NCBI GenBank assembly: GCA_037379345.1
Contig: CM074514.1
Coordinates: 21,142,001-21,206,000 of the forward strand
DNA from: Perna viridis
Taxonomy: Eukaryota
Reading direction: 5' to 3'
DNA length: 64,000 bases
Shown: piece by piece, positions 6,672-61,800 of the stretch
How the letters are laid out: every line of letters begins with the position of its first letter
Position numbering within the stretch: position 1 is the first letter of the stretch
Notes under the pieces: generated by a model
The model's input: the letters and a program-made list of their open reading frames with translations, nothing else
The model's database searches: none
Told to the model about the DNA's origin: nothing
Program-made: the position numbers and the translations under genes

Positions 6672-7743
6672 TTTTTATACTTCCCCCTCCCCAAACAAAG
6701 TTTTGGGAACATTTAGGAATCACCATGTCTGTCCGTCCGTCTGTCTGTCTGCATTACTTGTAAGCACAACTTCTCCTAAACCACTCACAGGATTTTGATG
6801 AAATTTAATAGGAAGGTTGGGTATCATATGTAGATGTGCATGAAGGAATATAATTACTGTCTGAGGACTCCAAAGGGAGATGATTCAGATTAAGGGTTTT
6901 ACATGTTAATACCTCGTAAGTGCAACCAACTCCTGCTAAACTGCTCAAGGGATTTTGATTAAATTGTACAGGAATTTTGAGTATCATATTTAGATGTGCA
7001 TGAAGGAGTATGGTTACTTTCAGAAGACTCCAAGGAGAGATCATCCAAATTATGGGTTTTACAAGTTAAAATCTCGTTAAGTGTAACTCCTCCTTTATCT
7101 CTCAAGAGATTTTGATGAAATTTTATAGAAAAGTTTGATATCATTTGAAGATATGCATTAAGGTATGTGATTAGAGGACCCCAAAGGGAGATAATCCAAA
7201 TTAAAGGTTTAACATGTTAAAACCTTGTAAGTGCAATCAACTCCTAAACCACTCAATGGATTTTGATGAAATTGTATAGGAATTTTGAGTATCATTTGTA
7301 GATGGGTATGAAGGAATATAATAAATGTCGGAGGACTCCAAGGGGAAATAACCTGAATTATGTTTTTTTCATGTTAAAACCTTAGATTATGGGTTTTTTC
7401 ATGTCAAAACCTTGTAGGTGCAGCTCCTCCTAAACCACTCAAGGGATTTTGATGAAATTTTATAGGAAGTTTTAGTATCATATACAGATGTGCATCATGG
7501 AATATGATTACTGTCAGAGGACTTCAAAGGGAGAAAACCTTGTAATTAAACTCCTTCTATATACTGTTCAAGGGATTTTGATGAAATATTATAAGAAGGT
7601 TGGGTACCATATGTAGATATGCATGAAGGAATATAATTACTGTTGGGTGATGCCAAAAGAAAAAACCATCATGGTTTTTTATTTAAGTTCATTTGAAGCA
7701 GGGGTGTATTCTCTTTGTGAACTTGCTCACAGTATTTCTAGTT
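6672..7743 (+). mobile_element. Non-autonomous Helentron/HINE (DINE-1-like) element with about 6 internal ~155-bp tandem units
   Basis: Starts TTTTTATAC, then a (GTCY)n microsatellite at about 6727-6750, units beginning TTGTAAG at about 6758, 6915, 7074, 7224, 7412, 7539, a subterminal GGGGTGTA, a 3' hairpin TGTGA-acttgc-TCACA and a terminal CTAGTT; second copy at 57651. Confidence 0.78.
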
Positions 7744-29100: not shown

Positions 29101-32100
29101 TCCAGTGTACAGGAAGTACCCACAGTAAGTTATAAAGATGTCAAACTAACTTGTTTATATATTGTGGAATTAATTCCAGACATGAACCTTTCAAAAATTC
29201 TCAAGTACATGTACATGTATTTGCAATATCCTGAAGACCTAACTTAAATGAACATTTAAGTACACAATGTGAACTGTACCTTTGTACTAGTTATCAGTCA
29301 ATACTGTCCACTTAGGAAATGTAGAATAAAGCACTTGGTTTTTGATCGTTGTTTTTGAAATCTGTTGTTTTTTTATAACCACCACACTTAGTGGCGAGGT
29401 ATTATTTGATACCTTCCGAAAAGTTGCATGCCCATCAGTCTGTCCATCATTGGTTTCCAGATGATAACTTGAGTACATGTATGGATTGATGCATTTTTTT
29501 AAAAACTTTGCACAGTTGTTAAGTACCATAAAATAATGTTCAAGTTCAATTCTGAAAGTAGTTTTTGAGTTAATCCATTTTGAACATTTTGCCATCCTCC
29601 TTTTCCTCCATTTTGTGGTAGAGTAACACTAAATGTTTCATTAATGCTCTATTTCTTTTTTTTTTCAGACTGACATTACAGAAATTTGTCCCAGTCCTCT
29701 GGAGTGTGCTCAACAGCTTACACATATTGAACTGGTAAGAATTATAACCATTTAAAAATACTGAGAAGAAAATCATAGAAGACAGAAAGTAATACTTATA
29801 TTTTGAATGATAAATTCAGGAAAGTTTCTATTAAATTGTGATATAAAGCTGTATTAAGATTTCAGTTCCAAAACTATTCTAAGGATTACTGTGAAAGTGT
29901 TATTGCTTGTCGAGTACTAATTTTCATGGCTTTCATTGGGTGGGGGAAATCTGATCCCAGTGAAAAGAAAATTTCCCATTCATTTGTATGACAGTATTGT
30001 CAAATCCACAAATTTAAGAATCTACTAACTGACAGTTTTCCCCTAAACCATGAAAATTGATACCCACAAATAAAAGTACATTCACAGTTTTTTTTCTTAT
30101 ATATTTAAACATTCTTTTTATTTTATTTTAAAATTGCTTTTTTTCTGCAGGAGAGGTTAGGTCAGATTGGTCCGGAAGAATTTGTCCAAGCCTTTGCTAA
30201 AGAAAATGTTGGAACAGAGGTAAATTTCTTCATAGTTAATAAGGGATCAACAAACTTTGAGTCGAAGTTAACAACAAATTGAAATTTATTTTTGTGATAT
30301 GATAATTTTTAATAATTTATTTGTAGATGTGCAAGACCAGTGTTTTATAAAAGAAAATAAAATACAAAGAAACAGCAGTCTGAGAATTAATGCCCCTCCC
30401 CCTAGTTTAATATTGACAAGAACCAAACAGTATGGTAATGAAAGTAAATGCCCCCATAAAAATTGGGTGATATTTTTTGAAACTTTTCTGACACTGTCAT
30501 ACAATTTTACTCAAGGTAAATCATTGTTCAATAATTCAAATGCTGAAAATTTAAATTTTAAGTGTACACGTAATAATTGTCTTTTTTCCAGACTTCTTTC
30601 AAAGACATGAAGAAAACCTCCAATTTAGAGGCCTATGTTCAATGGTTTAACAGACTAAGTTATCTAGTCACAACCGAGATTTGTTCAGTAAGTGGAATTC
30701 TCTAATAACAATACTGTTAATTTTACAAGAAAGGAATCAATTTGTTTAAATATTGAGAATAAACTGCTTAGAATCACCATTTAAACATCAGAGATCTTTT
30801 AAATCTGTTCTTTGTGCTTTATGATATCTGCATTAATTTTTCTACACAAGGCGGTGCTTTATCAGTTCTTACTGTTAAAAAGAATTTGTCTGTACAAGAA
30901 TGTTTCATAAGAGTTTTCTCTTTTTTTTTAGCATTTGAAGAAGAAGAATCGTGTGAAAGTGATAGAATATTTCCTGGATGTTGGTAAAGAATGTATCAAC
31001 ATTGGAAACTTCAACTCACTGATAGCAATCATTGCTGGTTTAAACATGAGCCAAGTATCAAGGTTGAAGAAAACGGTAAGTTCAATTAATGATCAAAACA
31101 GTAATCCATCGCTGAAGCAATCAAGATTCCTTATCATTAGATGTAAAATCAGTTCTGGTAAATATTTGAATAAAACAGTATTATTTCATTCCAAATGGCA
31201 TTAGCAAGACTTCAATATTTTGTGATCTAAGGAGGATAACTCTGTTTGTTGATTCCAAACTATAATATTTATAATATTTATTTACAGTGGGCCAAGGTCA
31301 ATACAACAAAGTTTGAGATTTTAGAACACCAGATGGACCCATCAAACAACTTTGGAAGTTACAGATCTTGTTTGAAAGCTGCTCAATGGAGGTCAGAAGG
31401 TGCAAGCAATGAAAGGGAGAAGGTATGACATCTGACAAGTTTGTTATGACTCCAATCGATGGGGACACAAAAACATTAAAAATATTGTTAGAAAAAATGC
31501 TTAGATGAAAATTGGTTAATCAAAGCATAAAAGTGAGTAAATATTATTACAATTAATTCTGATCCCTAAAAAATATCCAAAGTGGGTTATTAATTGGATG
31601 AATATGGTATTGCCAATTATTATTTCCCCATTTATTTTATTTTTTCAGATAGTCATTCCATTTTTTAGTTTGTTTGTGAAGGACCTATACTTCTTAAATG
31701 AAGGTCGCTCGAGCAAGTAAGTTTACTTTGATACTTAAGATAGTTTGATAACTAAGTTAAATGATTCCTTAATCATCTTTATGTTAATGATGTTAAATGA
31801 TTCCTTAGTCATCTTTATGTTAATGATGTTAAATGATTCCTTAGTCATCTTTATGTTAATGATGTTAAATGATTCCTTAGTCATCTTAAATTAACCAACT
31901 ACTTCCTTTATCTTATTGCATATTTACCAGGATATAATACTTGCTGAAACTTTATAACTTTAAATAAACACATATGTGGAAAACTTGGTGTTTTTACCAA
32001 ATAGTATTTCTTATATGATCATATTATTATCAGGTTGGAGAATGGGAACATTAATTTTGAGAAGTTTTGGCAGCTAGCCAAACAGATTTCTGAATTAGTC

Positions 32101-43800: not shown

Positions 43801-46800
43801 TACAGGGCCACTAATGGTGTGAATGGAGTTAATGGTATGAATGGTCATAATGTTTTACCTGATATAAGTACAGACATACCACCAAGTAGACCTTTTACAC
43901 CTAGTGAACAGATGGATATTATGAGGGCATTTGAAGACCATGAACTATCTGAAACTGGAGAACCTTCAAACCGAGATGAAGAGGTTTGAGTATAGTTTAA
44001 ATTTGTTTTTGGTTCCTGGAATATGTGATTTGTTGACACACCAAAGAGTCATATTTCTTCAATATTTTTCCTTTGAAAATTATTATCTACAATGAAAAGG
44101 AAAAAATTAAGAACTATTACTGTAAAGTGTACAATATTAAAAGGGTTAAAATTTGTATTCTAACAAAACTACATACAATTTTTTATGACAGAATACATAC
44201 ACATGCAGTGTCCAATCTAGAGCATGCCATTTTGGGATTCCAACCATTTTTGTCATTCTGGTGCAATGGAAATTGTAACCTGGTCCAAATTGGATGTATT
44301 GAATTTTCAACTTTTGAAGTTGTCCATTTCATGATTACCAGAAATAGGTCGCATAGTGCATTGGATTTTAGATAACCATTGAGTCTGAGTCAGTATTGCA
44401 CTTGAAGACATGTCATTTTCTATTTTCCCTCCTTCTAAGTCAACCAAACGCTTTGAGTATAGTTCTGAAATAAAAGAGAAATTATCTTCATATTACTGAC
44501 CGTGAGGGAGAAGCGAGTAAAGGCCATGAATACTGAAAAGAACCCTGAAGGAAATATTGACAGTATAATTGAAATCTGATAGGTGTTGGAAATTTGTCAA
44601 TCGTACCTGTCAGCAAGTTTTGTCAGAGACACAGCCATCACTGGCATCTATTTTCATCTATGGTTGGTGACTATCAAATATAAATTCATATTTGATAGTC
44701 ACGACCATTGATATATACCAGTGCCTGTGACAGCCATGTCCAAATTAAATTTCTTCAAAATATCTGTTAGTTATCTTGTTATTTATTACCACCAATTAAA
44801 TTATGTTTTTGTAGACAGCTTTTATGATATAGGTTATTTTGGATAGATCTAATTTCTTTTCATAGATTGAACACTGCATATATATATTAACTTATTTTAT
44901 ATGGAAAGAAATACAAGTTTTTATCTTTCCACTACAAATGTAGTAGATTTCGTACATGAAAAGATGAAATAGATTTGAAAAAATTGAAGTTTTTTTTTCA
45001 TATTCACTAAATGATATAAAACCGTATGATTTATTATTGGTACAGACAGAGAACAATAATTAACAACATGTAATTTAATTTTGTAGAGATATTACTACTA
45101 CATACAAAAGGGTGTAAAGAGGCAGATGTTGGCTCCTGCAAACCCAGACACAATGAAGAAAATTAAATCTCTAGTCCCTCAGCCTTTACTCTCTAGTACA
45201 GCTTTGTCTCCTATGGTGGAGAATCTTTCTGATGAAATACAGAATGATTATGAATTTAGTTTAAGGAAAGCTATTGGTAAGAAGTTTGAATAATATCTCA
45301 AAGCAGACAAATATTTGACTTAACTCATATGCTTGTCATTTTTATTTGAAAAATTGCAGCAACCCCACCCTTTGCGTTATGCATGTGATTTTAAACTCTA
45401 TGTTGATTTCTTAAATAATAATTCAGTAAAGTTTTGCCTTTGTTGTAGACATTGTAAATGATAAATGAAATATGTTGTCTTTGGTTACCACAGGATTCTC
45501 CTTGTACACAAAAAAATAATGACTTTTTATTAATTGTTTTAGTTGACTACATTTTGAAAGACCCAACTGAGAAAGACAGATTACATATAGCATGGACACC
45601 TAAACCTTTTCCTCACAGGTAACATTTGAATACTATTATAACTATTTTGTACTAAAGTGTAATAAAAACTACGATTTTGTAATGTTATATACTTATGTTT
45701 AAGTAATTTTAAGAAAGGAAAAAATAACTATTACACAAAAATGTGGTAGTAAGATGAATGATTTTTGAAAAAAAGAGTTTTTACACAACTTAAACCTACC
45801 TTTTATTAGCAGAACCATCAGATTTTAGACCTAAATACAACGGAACTGGAATAGAGAGATAATTTTTTTTCAGTTTTTTTATTTGCTACTTTTCTATATT
45901 GGATCAAACATTTTATTCTGTTTTATAATTCTTCAGGGTAATTCGTGCTCCTGTTCCATGGCATGACAGCTATAGAAACATGAAAGACTTAAACAAAATA
46001 CATTTGTTTATTACCAACCCAATCATGTTGCAGCTACAGAATATCTGGTTTGACCGGTAAGTTTTTACCAATGTTTACCAATTGTTATATATAAGCCATG
46101 TCACCTTTTACTGTATAATTTTATTTAAAACCTATATTATTATGACATCTGTAAGAATCAAGTGACTGGGATTAAAATTTTGAGAATGAACTATTTTTGG
46201 TGATAACCAGAATATTTTTAGTTAAAAATCTGATTAAAATGGGACATTTTCAGCTGGAATGTGACAAATTGTGCAATGAAAATATTTTTATTATTTTCTT
46301 CTTTTTTTGTTGATGAGTGTGGAAGAAAACTCCTTTTTGTTTTTTATGGCTTTCCATATTTTTCTTGTGGACTGTATATTCTGAAATAAGAGGGACAAAT
46401 GTATTGTGTGCAAACAGAGGCCTGGTTGTTTTTAACTTCATTCATTCAAGATATATTTATCCACTGGATAACTTGTATTTGACCCAGAGGATAACTATTG
46501 TCCAGCTAGATAAAAAAAATCTTTTTGTTGATCAGTTGTAACTGAGTGTTTAAACGAGGAATAAAATGTGTTTAAGAAAGACTTGTTTAAAATACTTTTG
46601 TAATGTTTAAAAAAAAAATCTGATGACTGAGGAGTATTAAAGTGTCAAATGCATAAATTATCTATTACAGGTTCAATGACCTGAGATTCGTGAACCTGAA
46701 TGAATTAAATGCTGCAGATTTACCATTGTTACCGGCAGAGTTTGAATCTTTGGTGAAGAAACAGTGCTGGGAGGCTCACGAAGTACTCAGGAAAAAGTAA

Positions 46801-49800
46801 TGACTTCCATTTATCTATGTTTCGACAAAAAGTCCTTAACTTTGGTTTTACTTTTCTTTATTTTCTGCTACTTTTTCTGGTCAAGTAAAATGTATTTTTT
46901 ATTGAAAATCCCTTTTTTATTGTTTTAAGATTTTTAAAGATGTGTGTGATAAGAGATAGGATTATTCTTATGTATATTTTTATGTAGGAGAGCTGATGGA
47001 TATTACTATTAGTACATTTTTGTATTATCTATTTGAAACTATTCACAAATAATCAATAAGATATTCATATCTAATTTCTTTAAGAGAATTTCTAATTAAT
47101 TTTCAGTATAAAGTTGGAATTATTATTTTATCTGTGGATTACAACTGAAAAACAGTATTATTTATGAAAGGTTTATAACCATTGAGTAAACATTATATAA
47201 AGTATTTATAAATACTATTTTCAGTTGGATACCAAGTTGTGCCAAATTGTTTGTTGACAACAATGAGTTATGGGAACACCTAGTCCCTCCTGAAGATGAT
47301 GATTCTACAGAACTAGTTGAAGAATTCTTTGCTTGTGTTGCTGCTCTCATGTCCATACAACTCAGGGGCATGGTTATCAATTCTCTGTCAGACTTCCTTC
47401 GTTTCTTCCAAACTCACAAGGTATAAACATAAGTTTTAAAGCATTGTGTTCTGAGAGATATCTTATACACCGTTTGACAAGTAAAGTACTTCTCAATGAT
47501 TTTGATGATATAGCATCTACACCATTTCAATATTTTATACACAAAAAAAACGATAAATTATGTAGGAGTTTAAAAAAGTTTAATAAATAATGCTACCTCT
47601 GCAATGTGCCGTATGCTTTAAATTGTTATCAGTTTTTTGTTTTGCTGTCTTGATGTCTACTTTCCAGAAACACATAGCAGTCTCTCTACATTTATAATTT
47701 ATTTTTTTTACTTTAGTTGTTTGATTTTTGTGAATTCAACACATAGCTTTTGCAATGTAAATTCTTTATCTACTGGAAAATTTTCAGGTTTGCACTGTTA
47801 CTGCATACCTTCAATTCATTCAATGCAATGTCTTTCTGTGTTTGAGTTTATCATGATTTAATTTAATTGTAGGCAGGGAATGACTTTGAAGAACCATTTG
47901 ATGAACTGAAATACCTTGAGACTTCCATCATGATAATCAAACTGAAAGTAGAAGAACCCAAAATAGTGTTTGACCCATTGTTTAAAGAAATCAGAGATAT
48001 TATCCTGAGATGTTTCTCTGAAATTGTTGCCAGTGGTGATGGCCTTACAAGGGTAGGTTTTTAGTTAGGTGATGGTCTTACAAGAGTAGGTTTAGTTATG
48101 TGATGGTTTTACAAGAGAAGGCTTTTAGTTCATTTTAACATCTCTAGCATATAAATATGATTTTCTTAAATATGTAAGTAAACAAAATGTGTAATATAGT
48201 ACAAATTGTTAAAAAAAATTCTATTTAAATATCAGTTCATATAAAATTCAGGCACTGCCAATGATTAAATGATTCATGGCGAAGAAAAACAAACAGAACA
48301 AACGATGCTTTTTCGGTCTACATGTGCTATATTTTCACTTAAAAATAGTCCTTTCTGTACTTAGATTTGTATTTTTGAAAAAAAAAACATCAACCAAATC
48401 AAACTGAAACAAAAACAGTAACTCTTGCAAAGTGCCAATTTCATAATTTTAAGACCAGTTTTGTGGTCTGTAGCCAGTACTAAATTAGAAATAAAATTGA
48501 GTTTAGTGGATTTTTGACATGCATGAATCACCTCCTGTTTGATTTTTTATAAAGACTACTACTTAAACAACCATCAACAACTTAGATATTTGAACTATGG
48601 AAGCCTATTATATAGACAACTGTTAATATAATTGGTGGAACCATGCAGCAAATATTTCTTGATAAGAAAATACCTTCAAAGTTCCCAGTTTTACAAAAGA
48701 AATTGAAAATTGCATAAAAATTTATTATGTCATTTTGACATACAAATGCTGTTACAAATCCAAGCCACATTTGTTTGGGTTAAGTCATTCTTTTTGATAT
48801 AAATATATGCTAGTATTGAAGTGTTTTTGGGTTAGCTTAATAAAAATACTTATTAACCAGACCATCAATTGATTTAAGCAAAATATTCATTTTTTTCCCC
48901 TGATATTTAATTTGATCAAATTTTTTAAAGAAACAAAGTACAAAATGTTCATTGCAATTACTAATCCATTACAATGAGAGATAGACTTCCATTTTGAATT
49001 ATTTAAATTAACATTTTGATAAATATATTGGTGTGTATTTTAGGTTGAATGTGAGTTATTCCCAGACATGAGGAGTAAGAAGTTACTACTGAGAACAGTG
49101 AAGATAGAAGAATCACTGGTGGTAGAATATGTAGATAAAGCCATGGATATCTTTAAGCATAATACAGTTGGACCACAAAAGTAAGTGCTCTGTTACTTTT
49201 AATTTTTAAAACACTATTTCTATTATAACAATTGAATAACAGGAAAGCTTGCATATCGAAAATTACCTCAGTGCAAACTTACGTATGAACATTTAATGAT
49301 GATATGAAAAAGTAGAATAAATACTGATAACAAGATACTGAAAAATCAATCCAATGTAATTATTATATTTTAGTTAAGTAACAGTAGTAAAACATCTAAT
49401 ACAGTGCATGTTAATCTTTATATCTTTATGTGTGACTCTACATAACTGCATCTATTTTGTAGGTATCTCAATACTTACAAGAAATATGCCAATCTACTGA
49501 ATAATGAGGCAGAACAGGAGGTAGCAGCCTTCCTCAGGGAGGACCACTCTATTGAGGCTTATAAACAGGTTTGTTTCACAATTAGTGTTCTATAGATTTA
49601 TAAATGAATCATTTTAAGGATTTCGGTTACAAACATACCAACTATAGTATAAGGTTAAAGAAATTACTAATAGCCTATCACATGCATTCTACTGACTCTA
49701 ATTTTAAACAACTCTCAAATTCAGTTAAGTGAAACGTCTTTTTGCATAAGAATAAAATGAAATATATTATGTTTTTAGCAATACATGTATTGTAGTCTGC

Positions 49801-52800: not shown

Positions 52801-55800
52801 ATGAATGAACTTTTTATAAGATTTGTTCTCAGCACTAACATACTGTTTTATTTATAAATATATTGGCAAGAACCACAAAACTTGAAATTATAATTATGAA
52901 TAACTTTATTCTCCAAAGAGTACTGTAACAATCATTGTATAAATTACAGGGTGTGAATATCTTGGCAGCACCTGATGATATCCAGGTTTTGTTAGATGAC
53001 CACATTGTAAAGGCCCAGACCATGAGGGGATCTCCATTTATCAAACCATTCGAGATTGAGATGAAGGAATGGGAAGAGAAACTTGTCATGATGCAGGATA
53101 TTCTTGATGAATGGCTCAAGGTAAATGTTACCTAATCAGATATTATTATGTATGTTATAGCAAAATATCTTGATAATTGATAAAATAAAACAATTCACTA
53201 TTGTACTGTTTATTGCCTTATTGTTAGGAGGTGGAAACTGTACTGCAATTGTCATGTTGAGTTATGAAACTGATAATAATTAGTCTGGAAGTTTCTATTC
53301 TTCAATATATAGAGATTGATGCTGATTAAGGTGGTTTTGATAATATTGTTATGGAAGGGTGATTAATGCTATATTCTTATTTAATAATATCCAATTTTGT
53401 TTTTCAGTGCCAAGCTACATGGTTGTATTTGGAGCCTATTTTCAGCTCAGAAGATATTTTGGCCCAGATGCCTGAAGAGGGTCGTAAGTTTGGTATTGTA
53501 GACAGTGTGTGGAGAGACATTATGACAGAGTCTGTTAAAGATCCTAACTGTTTAGTAGCTACCTCACAAAACAACATGTTAGGACGTCTAAGAGATGCCA
53601 ACAATCTACTGGAAGAAATTCAGAAGGGATTGAATGCCTACCTTGAGAAAAAGAGATTGTACTTTGCCAGGTAGACACCTATATGCGTATTTCATATGCT
53701 TAAAAGTCAAATATTGTGTGCTCTAATTTGAACCCTCTTTTTATACTATTCATGTATTAAGTATCATTCACTGTTTAATGCTTGAATGTCTTATTGTCAT
53801 AATTAAGTAAATTTTCAGATCATATTTTGATATTTTATTCTTCTGAAGTTTTACATGTAGAATTCCTATTTATTTGATAACTTTACCCAACTTGTTAGAT
53901 ATTTTGATAAATATGAGTCATTCTTTTTGTAGATTTTTCTTCTTGTCTAATGATGAGTTGTTGGAAATTCTATCAGAAACCAAAGATCCACTTCGTGTGC
54001 AGCCCCATCTAAAGAAATGTTTTGAAGGTATTGCCAAACTGGAGTTCACAGAAAACCAAGAGATTGTAGGCATGATTTCTGCTGAAAAGGAAACTGTACC
54101 ATATTCCACAAAGATTGTACCAGCAAAAGCCAATGTAAGTAATGCATGTAGAAATATGTTATTGTCATAAACTTGAAGGTAAAATTCATGTATCTTATAT
54201 TGAAGAATAGCTTAAACTTTGTTTTTTTCCCTTTAATTATTGTCTCTTGTTTTCTGTAAGTTTTGACAAACAATTGATTATGTTTCATTTTTTAACCTGT
54301 AGTGAATGACATGAAAATTAATTTCTAAAATTTAATCAATAAAATAGTGTAAGCTCTTAAAAGAATCAGTAGTTGAAATTCAGTAATTATAATTTAATGA
54401 ATCTGTAGGGTATGGTAGAGAAATGGTTATTATAATTTAATGAATCTGTAGGGTATGGTAGAGAAATGGTTATTATAATTTAATGAATCTGTAGGGTATG
54501 GTAGAGAAATGGTTATTATAATTTAATGAATCTGTAGGGTATGGTAGAGAAATGGTTATTATAATTTAATGAATCTGTAGGGTATGGTAGAGAAATGGTT
54601 ATTATAATTTAATGAATCTGTAGGGTATGGTAGAGAAATGGTTATTATAATTTAATGAATCTGTAGGGTATGGTAGAGAAATGGTTATTATAATTTAATG
54701 AATCTGTAGGGTATGGTAGAGAAATGGTTATTATAATTTAATGAATCTGTAGGGTATGGTAGAGAAATGGTTATTATAATTTAATGAATCTGTAGGGTAT
54801 GGTAGAGAAATGGTTATTATAATTTAATGAATCTGTAGGGTATGGTAGAGAAATGGTTATTATAATTTAATGAATCTGTAGGGTATGGTAGAGAAATGGT
54901 TATTATAATTTAATGAATCTGTAGGGTATGGTAGAGAAATGGTTATTATAATTTAATGAATCTGTAGGGTATGGTAGAGAAATGGTTATTATAATTTAAT
55001 GAATCTGTAGGGTATGGTAGAGAAATGGTTATTATAATTTAATGAATCTGTAGGGTATGGTAGAGAAATGGTTATTATAATTGAATGAATCTGTAGGGTA
55101 TGGTAGAGAAATGGTTATTATAATTGAATGAATCTGTAGGGTATGGTAGAGAAATGGTTATTATAATTGAATGAATCTGTAGGGTATGGTAGAGAAATGG
55201 TTATTATAATTGAATGAATCTGTAGGGTATGGTAGAGAAATGGTTATTATAATTTAATGAATCTGTAGGGTATGGTAGAGAAATGGTTATTATAATTGAA
55301 TGAATCTGTAGGGTATGGTAGAGAAATGGTTATTATAATTGAATGAATCTGTAGGGTATGGTAGAGAAATGGTTATTATAATTGAATGAATCTGTAGGGT
55401 ATGGTAGAGAAATGGTTATTATAATTTAATGAATCTGTAGGGTATGGTAGAGAAATGGTTATTATAATTGAATGAATCTGTAGGGTATGGTAGAGAAATG
55501 GTTATTATAATTGAATGAATCTGTAGGGTATGGTAGAGAAATGGTTATTATAATTTAATGAATCTGTAGGGTATGGTAGAGAAATGGTTATTATAATTGA
55601 ATGAATCTGTAGGGTATGGTAGAGAAATGGTTATTATAATTGAATGAATCTGTAGGGTATGGTAGAGAAATGGTTATTATAATTGAATGAATCTGTAGGG
55701 TATGGTAGAGAAATGGTTATTATAATTGAATGAATCTGTAGGGTATGGTAGAGAAATGGTTATTATAATTGAATGAATCTGTAGGGTATGGTAGAGAAAT

Positions 55801-58800
55801 GGTTATTATAATTGAATGAATCTGTAGGGTATGGTAGAGAAATGGTTATTATAATTGAATGAATCTGTAGGGTATGGTAGAGAAATGGTTATTATAATTT
55901 AATGAATCTGTAGGGTATGGTAGAGAAATGGTTATTATAATTGAATGAATCTGTAGGGTATGGTAGAGAAATGGTTATTATAATTTAATGAATCTGTAGG
56001 GTATGGTAGAGAAATGGTTATTATAATTTAATGAATCTGTAGGGTATGGTAGAGAAATGGTTATTATAATTTAATGAATCTGTAGGGTATGGTAGAGAAA
56101 TGGTTATTATAATTTAATGAATCTGTAGGGTATGGTAGAGAAATGGTTATTATAATTTAATGAATCTGTAGGGTATGGTAGAGAAATGGTTATTATAATT
56201 GAATGAATCTGTAGGGTATGGTAGAGAAATGGTTATTATAATTGAATGAATCTGTAGGGTATGGTAGAGAAATGGTTATTATAATTGAATGAATCTGTAG
56301 GGTATGGTAGAGAAATGGTTATTATAATTGAATGAATCTGTAGGGTATGGTAGAGAAATGGTTATTATAATTGAATGAATCTGTAGGGTATGGTAGAGAA
56401 ATGGTTATTATAATTGAATGAATCTGTAGGGTATGGTAGAGAAATGGTTATTATAATTGAATGAATCTGTAGGGTATGGTAGAGAAATGGTTATTATAAT
56501 TGAATGAATCTGTAGGGTATGGTAGAGAAATGGTTATTATAATTGAATGAATCTGTAGGGTATGGTAGAGAAATGGTTATTATAATTGAATGAATCTGTA
56601 GGGTATGGTAGAGAAATGGTTATTATAATTGAATGAATCTGTAGGGTATGGTAGAGAAATGGTTATTATAATTGAATGAATCTGTAGGGTATGGTAGAGA
56701 AATGGTTATTATAATTGAATGAATCTGTAGGGTATGGTAGAGAAATGGTTATTATAATTGAATGAATCTGTAGGGTATGGTAGAGAAATGGTTATTATAA
56801 TTGAATGAATCTGTAGGGTATGGTAGAGAAATGGTTATTATAATTGAATGAATCTGTAGGGTATGGTAGAGAAATGGTTATTATAATTGAATGAATCTGT
56901 AGGGTATGGTAGAGAAATGGTTATTATAATTGAATGAATCTGTAGGGTATGGTAGAGAAATGGTTATTATAATTGAATGAATCTGTAGGGTATGGTAGAG
57001 AAATGGTTATTATAATTGAATGAATCTGTAGGGTATGGTAGAGAAATGGTTATTATAATTTAATGAATCTGTAGGGTATGGTAGAGAAATGGTTATTATA
57101 ATTGAATGAATCTGTAGGGTATGGTAGAGAAATGGTTATTATAATTGAATGAATCTGTAGGGTATGGTAGAGAAATGGTTATTATAATTGAATGAATCTG
57201 TAGGGTATGGTAGAGAAATGGTTATTATAATTGAATGAATCTGTAGGGTATGGTAGAGAAATGGTTATTATAATTGAATGAATCTGTAGGGTATGGTAGA
57301 GAAATGGTTATTATAATTGAATGAATCTGTAGGGTATGGTAGAGAAATGGTTATTATAATTTAATGAATCTGTAGGGTATGGTAGAGAAATGGTTATTAT
57401 AATTGAATGAATCTGTAGGGTATGGTAGAGAAATGGTTATTGCAAGTAGAAGACATAATGATCAGTAGTTTACGTAAAGTTATCATGGATTCAAATGCTG
57501 CATATGGTACAACACCTCGTAATCAATGGGTCATAGACTGGCCTGGACAAGTTGTCATTTGTGTAGGCTCCATATGGTGGACAACAGAGGTTACAGAGTC
57601 TATGCAAAGACCTAATGGAATGAAGGTAAGATAATTTTTGTTTCCTCTAGTTTTTATACCTGCTGCAAACAAAGTTTGAGGGTATATAGGAATCACCCTG
57701 TATGTCTGTCTGTCTGTCTTTACACATTCCTTGTAAGCACAAATCCCCCTAAACTACTCAAGGAATTTTGATGAAATTTCATAGGAAGGTTAAGTGCCAT
57801 GTGTAGTTGTGCATGATGGAACTTTAAAATTGTCGGCGTACTCAAAAGGGAGATAATCCAAGGTTTTACATATCAAAATCTCGTAAGCACAACCACTCCT
57901 AAACCGCTCTAGGGATTTTAATGAATTTTTATAGGAAGGTTTGACATCATATGTTGATGTGCATTAAGGAACAAAATTACTGCCAACGGACTCCAAAGGG
58001 AGGTAATCCATATTATTGGCTTTACATGTTTAATCCTTGTAAGCACAGCTCCTCCTAAACTGCTCAAGAAATTTTAATTTTATTTTATAAGAATGTTGGG
58101 TATCAGATGTAGATGTGCATGAAAGAATATAGTTGCTGTTTGATGATATCAAAGGGAGATAAATCAATATTAAAGGTTTTATATATTTGAGTCTATTCGA
58201 AGTTGAGGGTATATCTCTGTGATCTTCCTCATGGTATTTCTAGTTTGTTTTGGTAAGATAGATATCTCAGTCTTAATAAAGCAAGAAAAATATATATGCT
58301 CATCACAGTAAATTGCTTTTTTTCAAGTTTAATGTTTCTGAAGTCCATTGAAAACATTAATATGTATTGCTCTAAATGTGTTCATATTTTTTTAACAATC
58401 AAATTTTCTTGGCTGTGTTGAAGGACCTGAATAATAGTTCTTTTTAGAAATAATATGGCAGCCTATGTGCATTACAGGAATATCATCAGAAATGTAATGG
58501 TCAGATAGATCAGATTGTCAAGTTAGTAAGAGGAAAACTAGAACCAGGACACAGAATTACTCTTGGAGCATTAACTGTCATTGATGTACATGGTATGTAG
58601 CACCAACACACACTATTATAAACTTTGTAGTATACTTTGTAACTAACAGAATGATTGTAAAAAAAAACATGCAATTCCAGAAACATCAAAAGCACATTGT
58701 ATATTCATCAGAAATGAATTAAAGAAAGGAAACATCCCAATAATCAAAGTCAACATTGAGGATCTTAATAAATCATGTGCACATCTTATGGTAAGCAACT

Positions 58801-61800
58801 CTTGCATAATGGTTTTTATGTCATATCATCAGAAATAAGTGAAACGCTAATACAAGTTAGAATTGATGACAGTTAAATATATAAGATGAGACATTTCATA
58901 ATAATCTATCAGTTCTTTGTTGTTCATTAAAGACCCATGGGTGACCTTGAGTTGACATTTTTCATTCCAATGCGATTGTTGTCTCACATATTCAATTTCC
59001 TTATATCAGGTGATGTACACTGTGACTAATTATGGAGCATGGAGTATAAATAAAATTTAGATTATTTGTTTTTATGATTTTTTCAAGCTCGTGATGTTGT
59101 TGCTCAAATGGCAAAAGATGGAGTCAGCAGTCCATTTGATTTTGATTGGCTGTCACAGTTACGTTACTACTGGGAAGATGATGTAATTGTCAGAATGATC
59201 ACCACTGATATCAAATATGGTTATGAGTACCTGGGAAATTCAGGACGTCTTGTTATTACACCTCTTACTGACAGATGTTACAGGTGAACAACTTAATAGG
59301 AAATCAGATTTATATTAATGCAATCTTAAAATATAGCTAATGAAATGCGGATTTAAGTATCAGTGGCAATATAGACTCAGAATTGGTGCTGATCTTCGTT
59401 AAATATAAGCTTAATTATTCTCTAAAGGAGTGATCTCTCACCCATTTATTTATTTATTTTTTTAATAGAATTTAATAAAACATTTTATAACAACTGAAAA
59501 TATTTTTCTGAGGATAATAGTATGTGTATTGTATATTTCAGAACTTTAATGGGAGCTTTGAAGTTGTTCCTTGGTGGGGCTCCTGAAGGACCTGCTGGAA
59601 CTGGAAAGACTGAAACCTGTAAAGATTTAGCAAAAGCTGTCGCTAAACAGGTAATATACCTCTTATCCACCTGTCACCCTCCTTTTTTTTTTTCTTAATT
59701 TCCAATCAGAGGGATCTTGCAATTAGCTAAACCTAAACAGTAAATCTTAGTTGTTTCTATAGTTTATTATGAAATTTATACCTTCACAACAGATAAAAAA
59801 CAACTACCTTCTTATACAGTTAGCATTTTAAAGAATAACTAAATCATATTCTTTTTCCTTTATTACATTTATTTCATTTGGTTGATATGATAATACAAGC
59901 TAAAAAAAAAACAAATTTGTGCTAATATTTGCATATTTTCATTAATTGTACAATTACTACTATCAATATCTACATTTTTTCTTAGCATTTTAAATCTTGG
60001 TTTTGTTTCAGTGTGTTGTATTTAACTGCTCCGATGGTCTGGATTACAAAGCCATGGGTAAATTCTTCAAAGGTCTGGCACAGGCTGGTGCTTGGGCTTG
60101 TTTTGATGAGTTTAATCGTATAGAACTGGAAGTGTTATCTGTCGTAGCTCAACAGATTCTTAGTATCCAACAAGCTGTAGCAGCTGGACTGAAAAGATTT
60201 ATGTTTGAGGGTACAGAACTGACCCTTGACCCTGCATGTACCTGCTTTATTACTATGAATCCTGGATACGCTGGTAGACAAGAGTTACCTGACAACCTTA
60301 AGGTATAAATGCAGATTTAATCTAATTAAGTGTTGCTTTATAGAAGACACAAGTTTCATGTGAAACTTCATGTGAAACTTTTTTCAAAACTATTATTTGC
60401 TGATGACTTAAAATACCGTAGGAGATGAGCAATTAAATTGAGTGGATGTGTAATATGAAGATCTGCAAGTTAATTTTTTTTTTTTTTTTTCAGACAGTAT
60501 TATGTTAGATTTAAAATCTCATGTTATTGCTATGATACAGAAATATATTTGTTAATGTTAATGGCAATGTTGAATCTTAATTTATTATCAAAGTGATGAT
60601 TCATACAATAACGATAGTTTAAATTGTCTACATCAGAATAAATATGAATGACACAATTCTGACACTCTTAATTGTTTTTGATAATGATAATTTCTCTAAC
60701 AACCCTAAAAACATATTCTACATACCTCAGTTAAAGTATATATAGCTGTACATATATAATTATTATAGGTATTGTTTAGAACAGTAGCTATGATGGTACC
60801 AGATTATGGAATGATTGGTGAAATCTCCCTCTACTCTATGGGATTCGTTGATGCTAGAAGGTTAGGTCATTACAACATAAAACCAAGTATAAGGAATCTA
60901 CATATTTAAAAGACAAAAAATATGCATAATTATTAGTATAAGATAGATAAACATAGCTTTTTAAAAAAAGAACAGCAGTTCTTCTTGACTGAAATGTATT
61001 AGTTATATGCTATTGAATTAAAAACAATATTCAGTCGATCTATTTAACTGTTTGATGAACTCATTTCCAACCTTTTTTTCAGTCTGGCCAACAAGATTGT
61101 AGCTGTATACAAACTGTGTTCAGAACAGTTGTCATCCCAGCACCATTATGATTATGGTATGAGAGCCGTAAAGTCTGTATTGACTGCTGCTGGTAACCTT
61201 AAACTTAAACATTTAGAAGAAAAGGAACCAGTTTTACTTCTGAAAGCTATAATGGATGTCAATCTTCCTAAATTCTTGGCTCAAGATGTGCCTCTGTTTG
61301 AGGGTATTATTTCTGACTTGTTTCCTGGTGTTGAATGTCCTAAACCAGATTATGGTGTATTCATGGAAGCTCTGAAGGATAATACAATCAAGAGGAAGCT
61401 ACAGCCTCACCCATGGTTCTTAGATAAAATTATACAAGTATGTAAAAATAGAATTGATTGTGATACTGACAATATTATGTTGAATATCTTGATGACCGAG
61501 TGATAAATACTGATAATAAATTTATTACCAGTCATGTAGCTTATAGTACTACTATAGGAAGCAAATTTGTATTTTGTGTATGTTGTTATTGTATCAGTAA
61601 TGTTCCAGTTCTAGCATTCAAATTGTGCAAACTTATGTAAGGTAAAATGTTTAAAATTCATTTTTATTGAACAGGTATATGAAATGATATTGGTTAGACA
61701 TGGTTTGATGGTGGTAGGAGAACCACTAGGTGGTAAGACATGTGGTTGGCAGGTACTAGCTGATGCCCTGTCAGATTTACATGCCTCTGGTGCCTATCCA

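Follow-up and report, generated by a model that had tools for sequence, protein, structure and literature searches.

The window analyzed here, 64,000 nucleotides of Perna viridis DNA (GenBank assembly GCA_037379345.1, contig CM074514.1, positions 21,142,001 to 21,206,000 of the forward strand), contains 71 tandem copies of a 43-bp unit, each of which carries the same 3' splice site of a dynein heavy chain gene assigned to the DNAH3 group. All positions below are those of the window. The dominant mature RNA, observed in two independent studies, joins the exon upstream of the array to the acceptor of copy 71, the last of the series. We consider it probable that the array is a young minisatellite of the exon-boundary ('mirage') type, specific to this locus, in which the exon-proximal acceptor wins.

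The array was delimited by repeat finding, in-register cutting, and a count of the acceptor string. Tandem Repeats Finder places one array on the forward strand, spanning 54386-57441 with a period of 43, 71.07 copies, 99% matches, and no indels. Each repeat unit consists of the last 23 nt of the intron, including the acceptor CTGTAG, followed by the first 20 nt of the next exon. The intron part of the unit reads ..TTATAATT[T/G]AATGAATCTGTAG, and comprises a branch-site-like TTATAAT motif, a weak pyrimidine tract, and CTGTAG. The two edges of the array share a 3-nt microhomology, ATT, and the whole is strongly skewed to G over C, with a single C per unit. No open reading frame of 30 or more amino acids occurs in the array on either strand, and a search of it against Rfam matched no family.

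In-register cutting yields 71 units of two kinds that differ only at unit position 10, where 27 have T and 44 have G. Apart from this column, the units do not differ at any base over 3,053 nt. Chance does not produce a perfect array of 3 kb. The order of the two kinds of unit is also nonrandom (16 runs vs 34.5 expected, P 2e-5), with blocks that include 16 T units at the 5' end of the array and one stretch of 20 G units. Such a blocked order is expected from multi-unit duplication or unequal exchange.

The string formed by the acceptor and the start of the exon occurs 71 times, so that exon-like starts are found at 54409 + 43n, the last of them at 57419. The first 70 (n = 0-69, the last at 57376) constitute a series of decoy acceptors over 54409-57418 on the forward strand. 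In these copies the frame runs GGT ATG GTA GAG AAA TGG TTA TTA TAA, which encodes GMVEKWLL followed by a stop. In copy 71 it instead runs ..TTA TTG CAA GTA GAA and continues as LQVEDIM.. into conserved DNAH3 sequence. Because the remainder of the exon directly follows the last unit and no other, only the acceptor of that unit gives an open frame.

The exon preceding the array (53933-54134, forward strand, as are all exons described here) is 202 nt long and ends on a complete codon (..GCC AAT) at the donor AAT/GTAAGT, where a slash within a sequence marks a cut. The intron that follows (54135-57418, forward strand) is 3,284 nt long and is composed of 251 nt of unique sequence and then the array; with one unit it would measure 274 nt. 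The downstream exon (57419-57625) is 207 nt long, starts in phase 0 at the acceptor of copy 71, and ends at the donor AAG/GTAAGA. When each exon was used singly in protein similarity searches, the upstream exon matched residues 1174-1239 of human DNAH3 (E 1.5e-31) and the downstream exon matched residues 1241-1302 (E 7e-19). The upstream exon scored 110 bits to human DNAH3 vs at most 81 to DNAH7 and DNAH12, and the downstream exon scored 70-73 bits vs at most 61 to the other dyneins compared, such that both exons score better to DNAH3 than to DNAH7, DNAH12, or DNAH1.

Pfam places the upstream exon at positions 315-378 of DHC_N2, directly after the preceding exon at 224-314, and along the window DHC_N2 is followed by AAA_6 and then by Dynein_AAA_lid. 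The translation downstream also includes the AAA1 P-loop, GPAGTGKT. Judged by these matches, the gene is an axonemal inner-arm dynein heavy chain of the DNAH3 group, and its predicted translation downstream of the array is open within the window. The DNAH3 and Pfam matches of both exons mark AAT/GGT as the conserved junction. The initial annotation numbers these two exons 25 and 26. That annotation of this DNA, made from the sequence, had described the same array (its period, its copy count, the stops after the decoys, and the continuation from copy 71), an intron grown from 274 nt to 3,284 nt, and a DNAH3 gene with AAA1 and later exons intact. All of these descriptions hold, the first on repeat finding and the sequence, the second on the exon boundaries, and the third on the protein and Pfam matches and the translation.

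Four read sets from three studies bear on how the intron is spliced and on whether the array is real. These are two raw RNA runs (X21 and X22) and two contig runs, one of RNA from a different study (X17) and one of DNA from work on a gut metagenome (X3). Reads were compared over 57310-59400, a stretch with three exons and, of the array, units 69-71; as a consequence, reads from all units pile onto these three copies. Two types of junction have to be told apart, namely the upstream exon joined to GGTATGG..TTATTGCAA vs ..TTATTATAA.

In X22, seven reads first match at 57419, and their unmatched parts (median 116 nt) give a consensus in full agreement with the final 30 nt of the upstream exon (54105-54134). 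In X17, a 9,639-nt contig with a depth of 31.3 carries the same 30 nt before 57419, and covers 57419-57623, 58476-58591, and 59087-59283 with no differences. These two observations establish that correctly spliced transcripts exist and that the last of the 71 acceptors is used, as the initial annotation had proposed. The next exon (58478-58592, donor ATG/GTATGT) and the one after it (59088-59283), where the AAA1 module begins and Pfam finds AAA_6, are likewise supported by RNA joints. The joint 57623>58476 (cut +2) is present in seven reads of X21, six reads of X22, and one contig of X17, and the joint 58591>59087 (cut +1) in six reads, five reads, and one contig, respectively. A loose end behind 59283 continues into the P-loop exon. 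At a threshold of 3 reads and a depth of ~3-8, no loose end with upstream-exon sequence was listed in the RNA runs at the decoys at 57333 or 57376.

The array itself is also represented in RNA. Approximately eight reads in X21 and two in X22 derive from it, and in X17 it forms a cycle contig with a depth of 25.2 (vs 31.3 for the mRNA). Array reads of X21 and X22 recorded as going back 129 are reads that hold more than three units. If 71 copies are assumed, array RNA amounts to ~2-5% of the exon level per base, which fits an unspliced intronic precursor. The zero reads in ~690 nt of unique intron nearby are compatible with this level.

A search of the whole genome (723 Mb in 46 pieces) matched the 43-bp unit only at this locus, which makes the array a local minisatellite and rules out a dispersed satellite or transposon. 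The downstream exon is single copy in the genome. A second gene copy as the source of the mRNA is ruled out by this result together with the RNA contig that matches with no differences.

The array was seen in four of four samples. In the DNA of X3, the repeat appears as a cyclic contig of exactly the 73 nt expected for a 43-nt cycle when words of 31 are used (43 + k - 1). The adjoining single-copy contig starts at 57412, the position of the first word that holds a unique base after the array. The depth of the cycle contig is 121 vs 6.85 for its single-copy neighbor (~18x), which suggests ~18 T-type units per haploid equivalent in an animal other than the assembled one, although contig depth is not copy number. 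Junctions between one unit and the next are present in all three RNA runs, and the X17 RNA has the same 43-nt cycle. The occurrence of unit junctions in independent DNA and RNA data means that the duplication is not an invention of the assembly and that it is common in the species.

The composition of the array appears to differ between animals. The variable column of units 69-71 corresponds to positions 57319, 57362, and 57405. In X21, every array read has T at positions that are G in the reference (eight of eight at 57319 and seven of seven at 57405), and the cycle contigs of X3 and X17 also carry T, whereas the two X22 reads carry G and the reference array is 62% G. Eight all-T reads would be drawn from an array with the reference composition with a P of about 1e-5. 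The G variant may have spread in a haplotype-specific manner. A second animal differs from the reference by ~1% in the flanking intron (five substitutions and two indels in 660 nt), whereas the array has no substitutions outside the T/G column over 3 kb.

From these data we infer the following history. A 43-bp segment straddling one DNAH3 acceptor, with the shared ATT at its edges, would have been duplicated in tandem. Expansion and homogenization by slippage or unequal exchange could then have produced the 71 units of the assembled haplotype, with the number of units and their T/G make-up coming to differ between animals. Most likely, the array is neutral or nearly neutral.

How the spliceosome settles on copy 71 is constrained by the uniformity of the units. 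The acceptors of copies 2-71 share identical sequence for >40 nt upstream and 23 nt downstream, and within each unit an AG-free zone precedes the acceptor, with TTATAAT ~17 nt upstream of the AG. Given identical acceptor modules, the discriminator must lie downstream of copy 71. The locus is therefore a natural test of 3' splice-site choice, in which 70 acceptors that share the branch-site region, the AG, and the first 20 exon bases lie upstream of the real one in a gene that still functions, and in which local sequence cannot be what distinguishes the copies.

Two candidate discriminators are the body of the exon, with a purine-rich element (GTAGAAGAC) that begins 5 nt past the divergence of copy 71 from the decoys, and the strong donor AAG/GTAAGA 207 nt away. 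By recognition across the exon, exon body and donor may together bring 3' splice-site factors to the acceptor closest to them, which is weak in itself. The pyrimidine content of the repeated acceptor is 0.45-0.50 vs 0.50-0.75 at three neighboring acceptors, and such a poor tract fits a dependence on exon-bound factors. Under this rule the exon-proximal site would win, mirroring human F7, in which the exon-adjacent donor of a repeat array is the sole one used. Splicing to a decoy would bring a stop 8 codons in, and the products would probably be degraded. Two other modes of choice were considered and rejected. Masking of the decoys by RNA structure finds no support in folding, as the predicted fold of the last five units with the start of the exon is no more stable than that of shuffled sequences (z +1.1), and choice of copy 1 on a first-come-first-served basis is contradicted for the dominant product, which uses copy 71.

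Several points weigh against this reading. First, the selecting mechanism is itself an inference, and recognition of the exon alone would not favor copy 71 over copies 70 or 69, whose exons of 250 and 293 nt would still be of normal size; an added effect of proximity, or of distance from an enhancer, must be assumed. Second, seven productive reads leave room for decoys to account for some tens of percent of the steady-state RNA, and nonsense-mediated decay (NMD) would hide more. Third, X21 has an exon depth of 8, yet it yields at most two possible junction reads and ~8 array reads that are all T; the Poisson P of so few junction reads is about 0.07. Fourth, a single-unit allele has no diagnostic 31-mer, so the productive mRNA could derive from one. 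Finally, the assembly is the sole source of the copy number of 71.

In the strongest competing explanation, the decoys are often used, their products are removed by NMD, and the array acts as an attenuator that sets DNAH3 output according to copy number, an idea of tuning raised in the initial annotation. Each unit has a complete local acceptor module, and the decoys are transcribed up to 3 kb ahead of the real acceptor. Array RNA is present in all three RNA runs, and in X21 it equals the exon reads when piled on three copies. Spread over the copies, however, this RNA is at a level that is ordinary for an intronic precursor. The transcript is well represented, with the 9.6-kb contig at depth 31 in X17, and no junction of the upstream exon to 57333 or 57376 reached 3 reads. 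Moreover, the pseudo-sites of published boundary minisatellites are silent or nearly so (PMC1557585; PMC3087553). Attenuation by decoy use therefore seems unlikely to us.

A different concern is that the expanded allele is null for splicing, and that the correct RNA comes from a single-unit allele in heterozygotes. Such an allele would be indistinguishable with 31-mers or in the examined stretch. However, a multi-unit array was found in four of four samples from three studies, so expanded alleles must be common, and X17 RNA has the array cycle together with the productive contig. DNAH3 is an inner-arm dynein on which cilia and sperm depend, and on general grounds a common null allele of such a protein would be costly. 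We thus regard a null allele as very unlikely.

That the assembly misrepresents the locus, either through a real array with an inflated length of 71 or through a spurious duplication, is more improbable still. The contig depth in another animal does point to ~18 T-type units per haploid equivalent and not 71. Nevertheless, a genome of 723 Mb in 46 pieces implies long-read assembly, for which 3 kb falls well within single reads. The irregular order of T and G units is unlike the outcome of collapse or stutter, and words spanning unit-to-unit junctions recur in the independent DNA and RNA data.

The least credible alternative is that the intron is removed stepwise by hopping from unit to unit via the donor-like GTATGG, for although TAG/G/GTATGG occurs in every unit (e.g., 57416-57425) with its GT 1 nt after the acceptor cut, and a GTATG-type donor is in use in the gene (ATG/GTATGT of exon 58478-58592), each hop would add one G and shift the frame. 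In RNA, the consensus at the junction is exact, with an agreement of 1 and no added G, and neither a 1-nt insertion nor a 42-nt skip is listed.

We also considered a broader proposal in which the array reflects a genome-wide tendency to seed and amplify repeats at splice junctions, and in which long acceptor-side arrays would adjust gene output by way of decoy splicing and NMD, as heritable and fast-mutating dials. In the window, repeat finding gives 15 rows (14 arrays), of which two extend across a junction, one is exonic, and the others examined are noncoding; this does not amount to a significant enrichment at junctions. Within the gene, the overlap of two of ~6 arrays with junctions is not beyond chance (roughly P 0.16 by arithmetic from the exon density). 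We hold this proposal to be improbable.

Other repeats in the window can be described briefly. At 48035-48130, the end of an upstream DNAH3 exon and its donor (..ACAAGG/GTAGGT) are present three times with a period of 31 and 86% matches, copies 2 and 3 being decayed, which makes this a donor-side counterpart of the 43-bp array. The two introns after the array exon carry a high-copy dispersed repeat (57660-58140 and 58920-58990), with a DNA contig depth of ~780 vs ~7 for the single-copy flanks. RNA reads on this repeat show foreign loose ends and odd joints, and so come from other copies; its sequence is similar to that of a tandem repeat at 6766-7382 (160 bp x 3.9). Near the probable start of the gene, an open frame holds a coding, in-frame repeat at 43812-43852 (18 bp x 2.3). 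At 31756-31887, a near-perfect 36-bp x 3.7 tandem repeat (98%) lies ~50 nt after a donor-like site (..GCAAG/GTAAGT), and the junction is outside the repeat.

Two kinds of regulatory or processing system invite comparison with the array without matching it. Recursive splice sites, the ratchet points of long introns, are 3' splice sites followed directly by donor-like sequence, such that the acceptor cut coincides with a regenerated donor. In the array units, unlike in recursive sites, the donor-like GT lies 1 nt after the cut, and re-splicing, which would leave an added G at every step, was not seen. The decoys resemble poison exons and other decoys coupled to NMD in that any use of them brings a stop 8 codons after the junction. 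They differ in that no mature RNA containing decoy sequence was detected here at a threshold of 3 reads and low depth.

The closest precedents are the 'mirage' minisatellites of amphioxus, which duplicate exon-intron boundaries in the genes for Adh3, the globins BflGb6 and BflGb9, troponin C, and PGBD5 (PMC3087553; PMC3902484). In BflGb6, the repeated segment runs from the 3' end of an intron into the first part of the following exon, with three and six units in two haplotypes, and splicing is undisturbed (PMC3087553; PMC3902484). More generally, the length of the amphioxus arrays differs between haplotypes and their units are homogenized within arrays (PMC3087553; PMC3902484). The mussel array shares three traits of this group. 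Its head-to-tail units are of minisatellite size, each holds a complete splice junction, and its mRNA uses the copy contiguous with the exon, with no decoy junction listed within a sensitivity limited by depth and NMD. As in amphioxus, the unit spans an exon-intron boundary and the duplicated AG or GT signals leave normal splicing undisturbed, and as in BflGb6 the repeat is on the acceptor side. The scale is different, however. Amphioxus arrays have three to six units of 150-160 bp (globin) or units of 10-72 bp (Adh3) with 81-100% identity, whereas here 71 units of 43 bp are identical save for one column. The host also belongs to a different phylum, and the gene encodes a 4,000-aa motor protein.

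A second set of precedents comes from human variable number tandem repeats (VNTRs) on the donor side, in F7 intron 7 (37 bp x 5-9), IFI6/6-16 (25 pseudo-sites), CBS intron 13 (15-20 repeats), LMNB2, and PDGF (PMC1557585). Mutational work on F7 revealed that the pseudo-sites are functional but out-competed, and across these VNTRs the other sites are functional in principle but silent, and copy number is polymorphic (PMC1557585). The mussel array resembles them in having an end unit that spans the boundary, identical sites reiterated in the intron, and use of the exon-adjacent copy. In the human cases, however, it is the 5' splice site that is repeated and the most upstream copy that wins, an outcome explained by 5'-to-3' scanning from the exon (PMC1557585). 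The mussel array instead repeats the 3' splice site, and the copy used is the one farthest downstream, an outcome that neither a 5'-to-3' scan from the donor nor a first-come-first-served rule would predict.

In the literature searched, we found no mussel work on such junction arrays. A claim of novelty for the locus is too strong, since boundary minisatellites with silent duplicated sites were already known (PMC3087553; PMC1557585). What sets it apart is degree, as its 70 identical acceptor decoys exceed the counts given for the amphioxus and human arrays compared (PMC3087553; PMC1557585). The array is an acceptor-side, unusually large and uniform case of the exon-boundary minisatellites already described. 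Together with the human donor-side cases, it supports a symmetrical rule in which the site next to the exon body wins.

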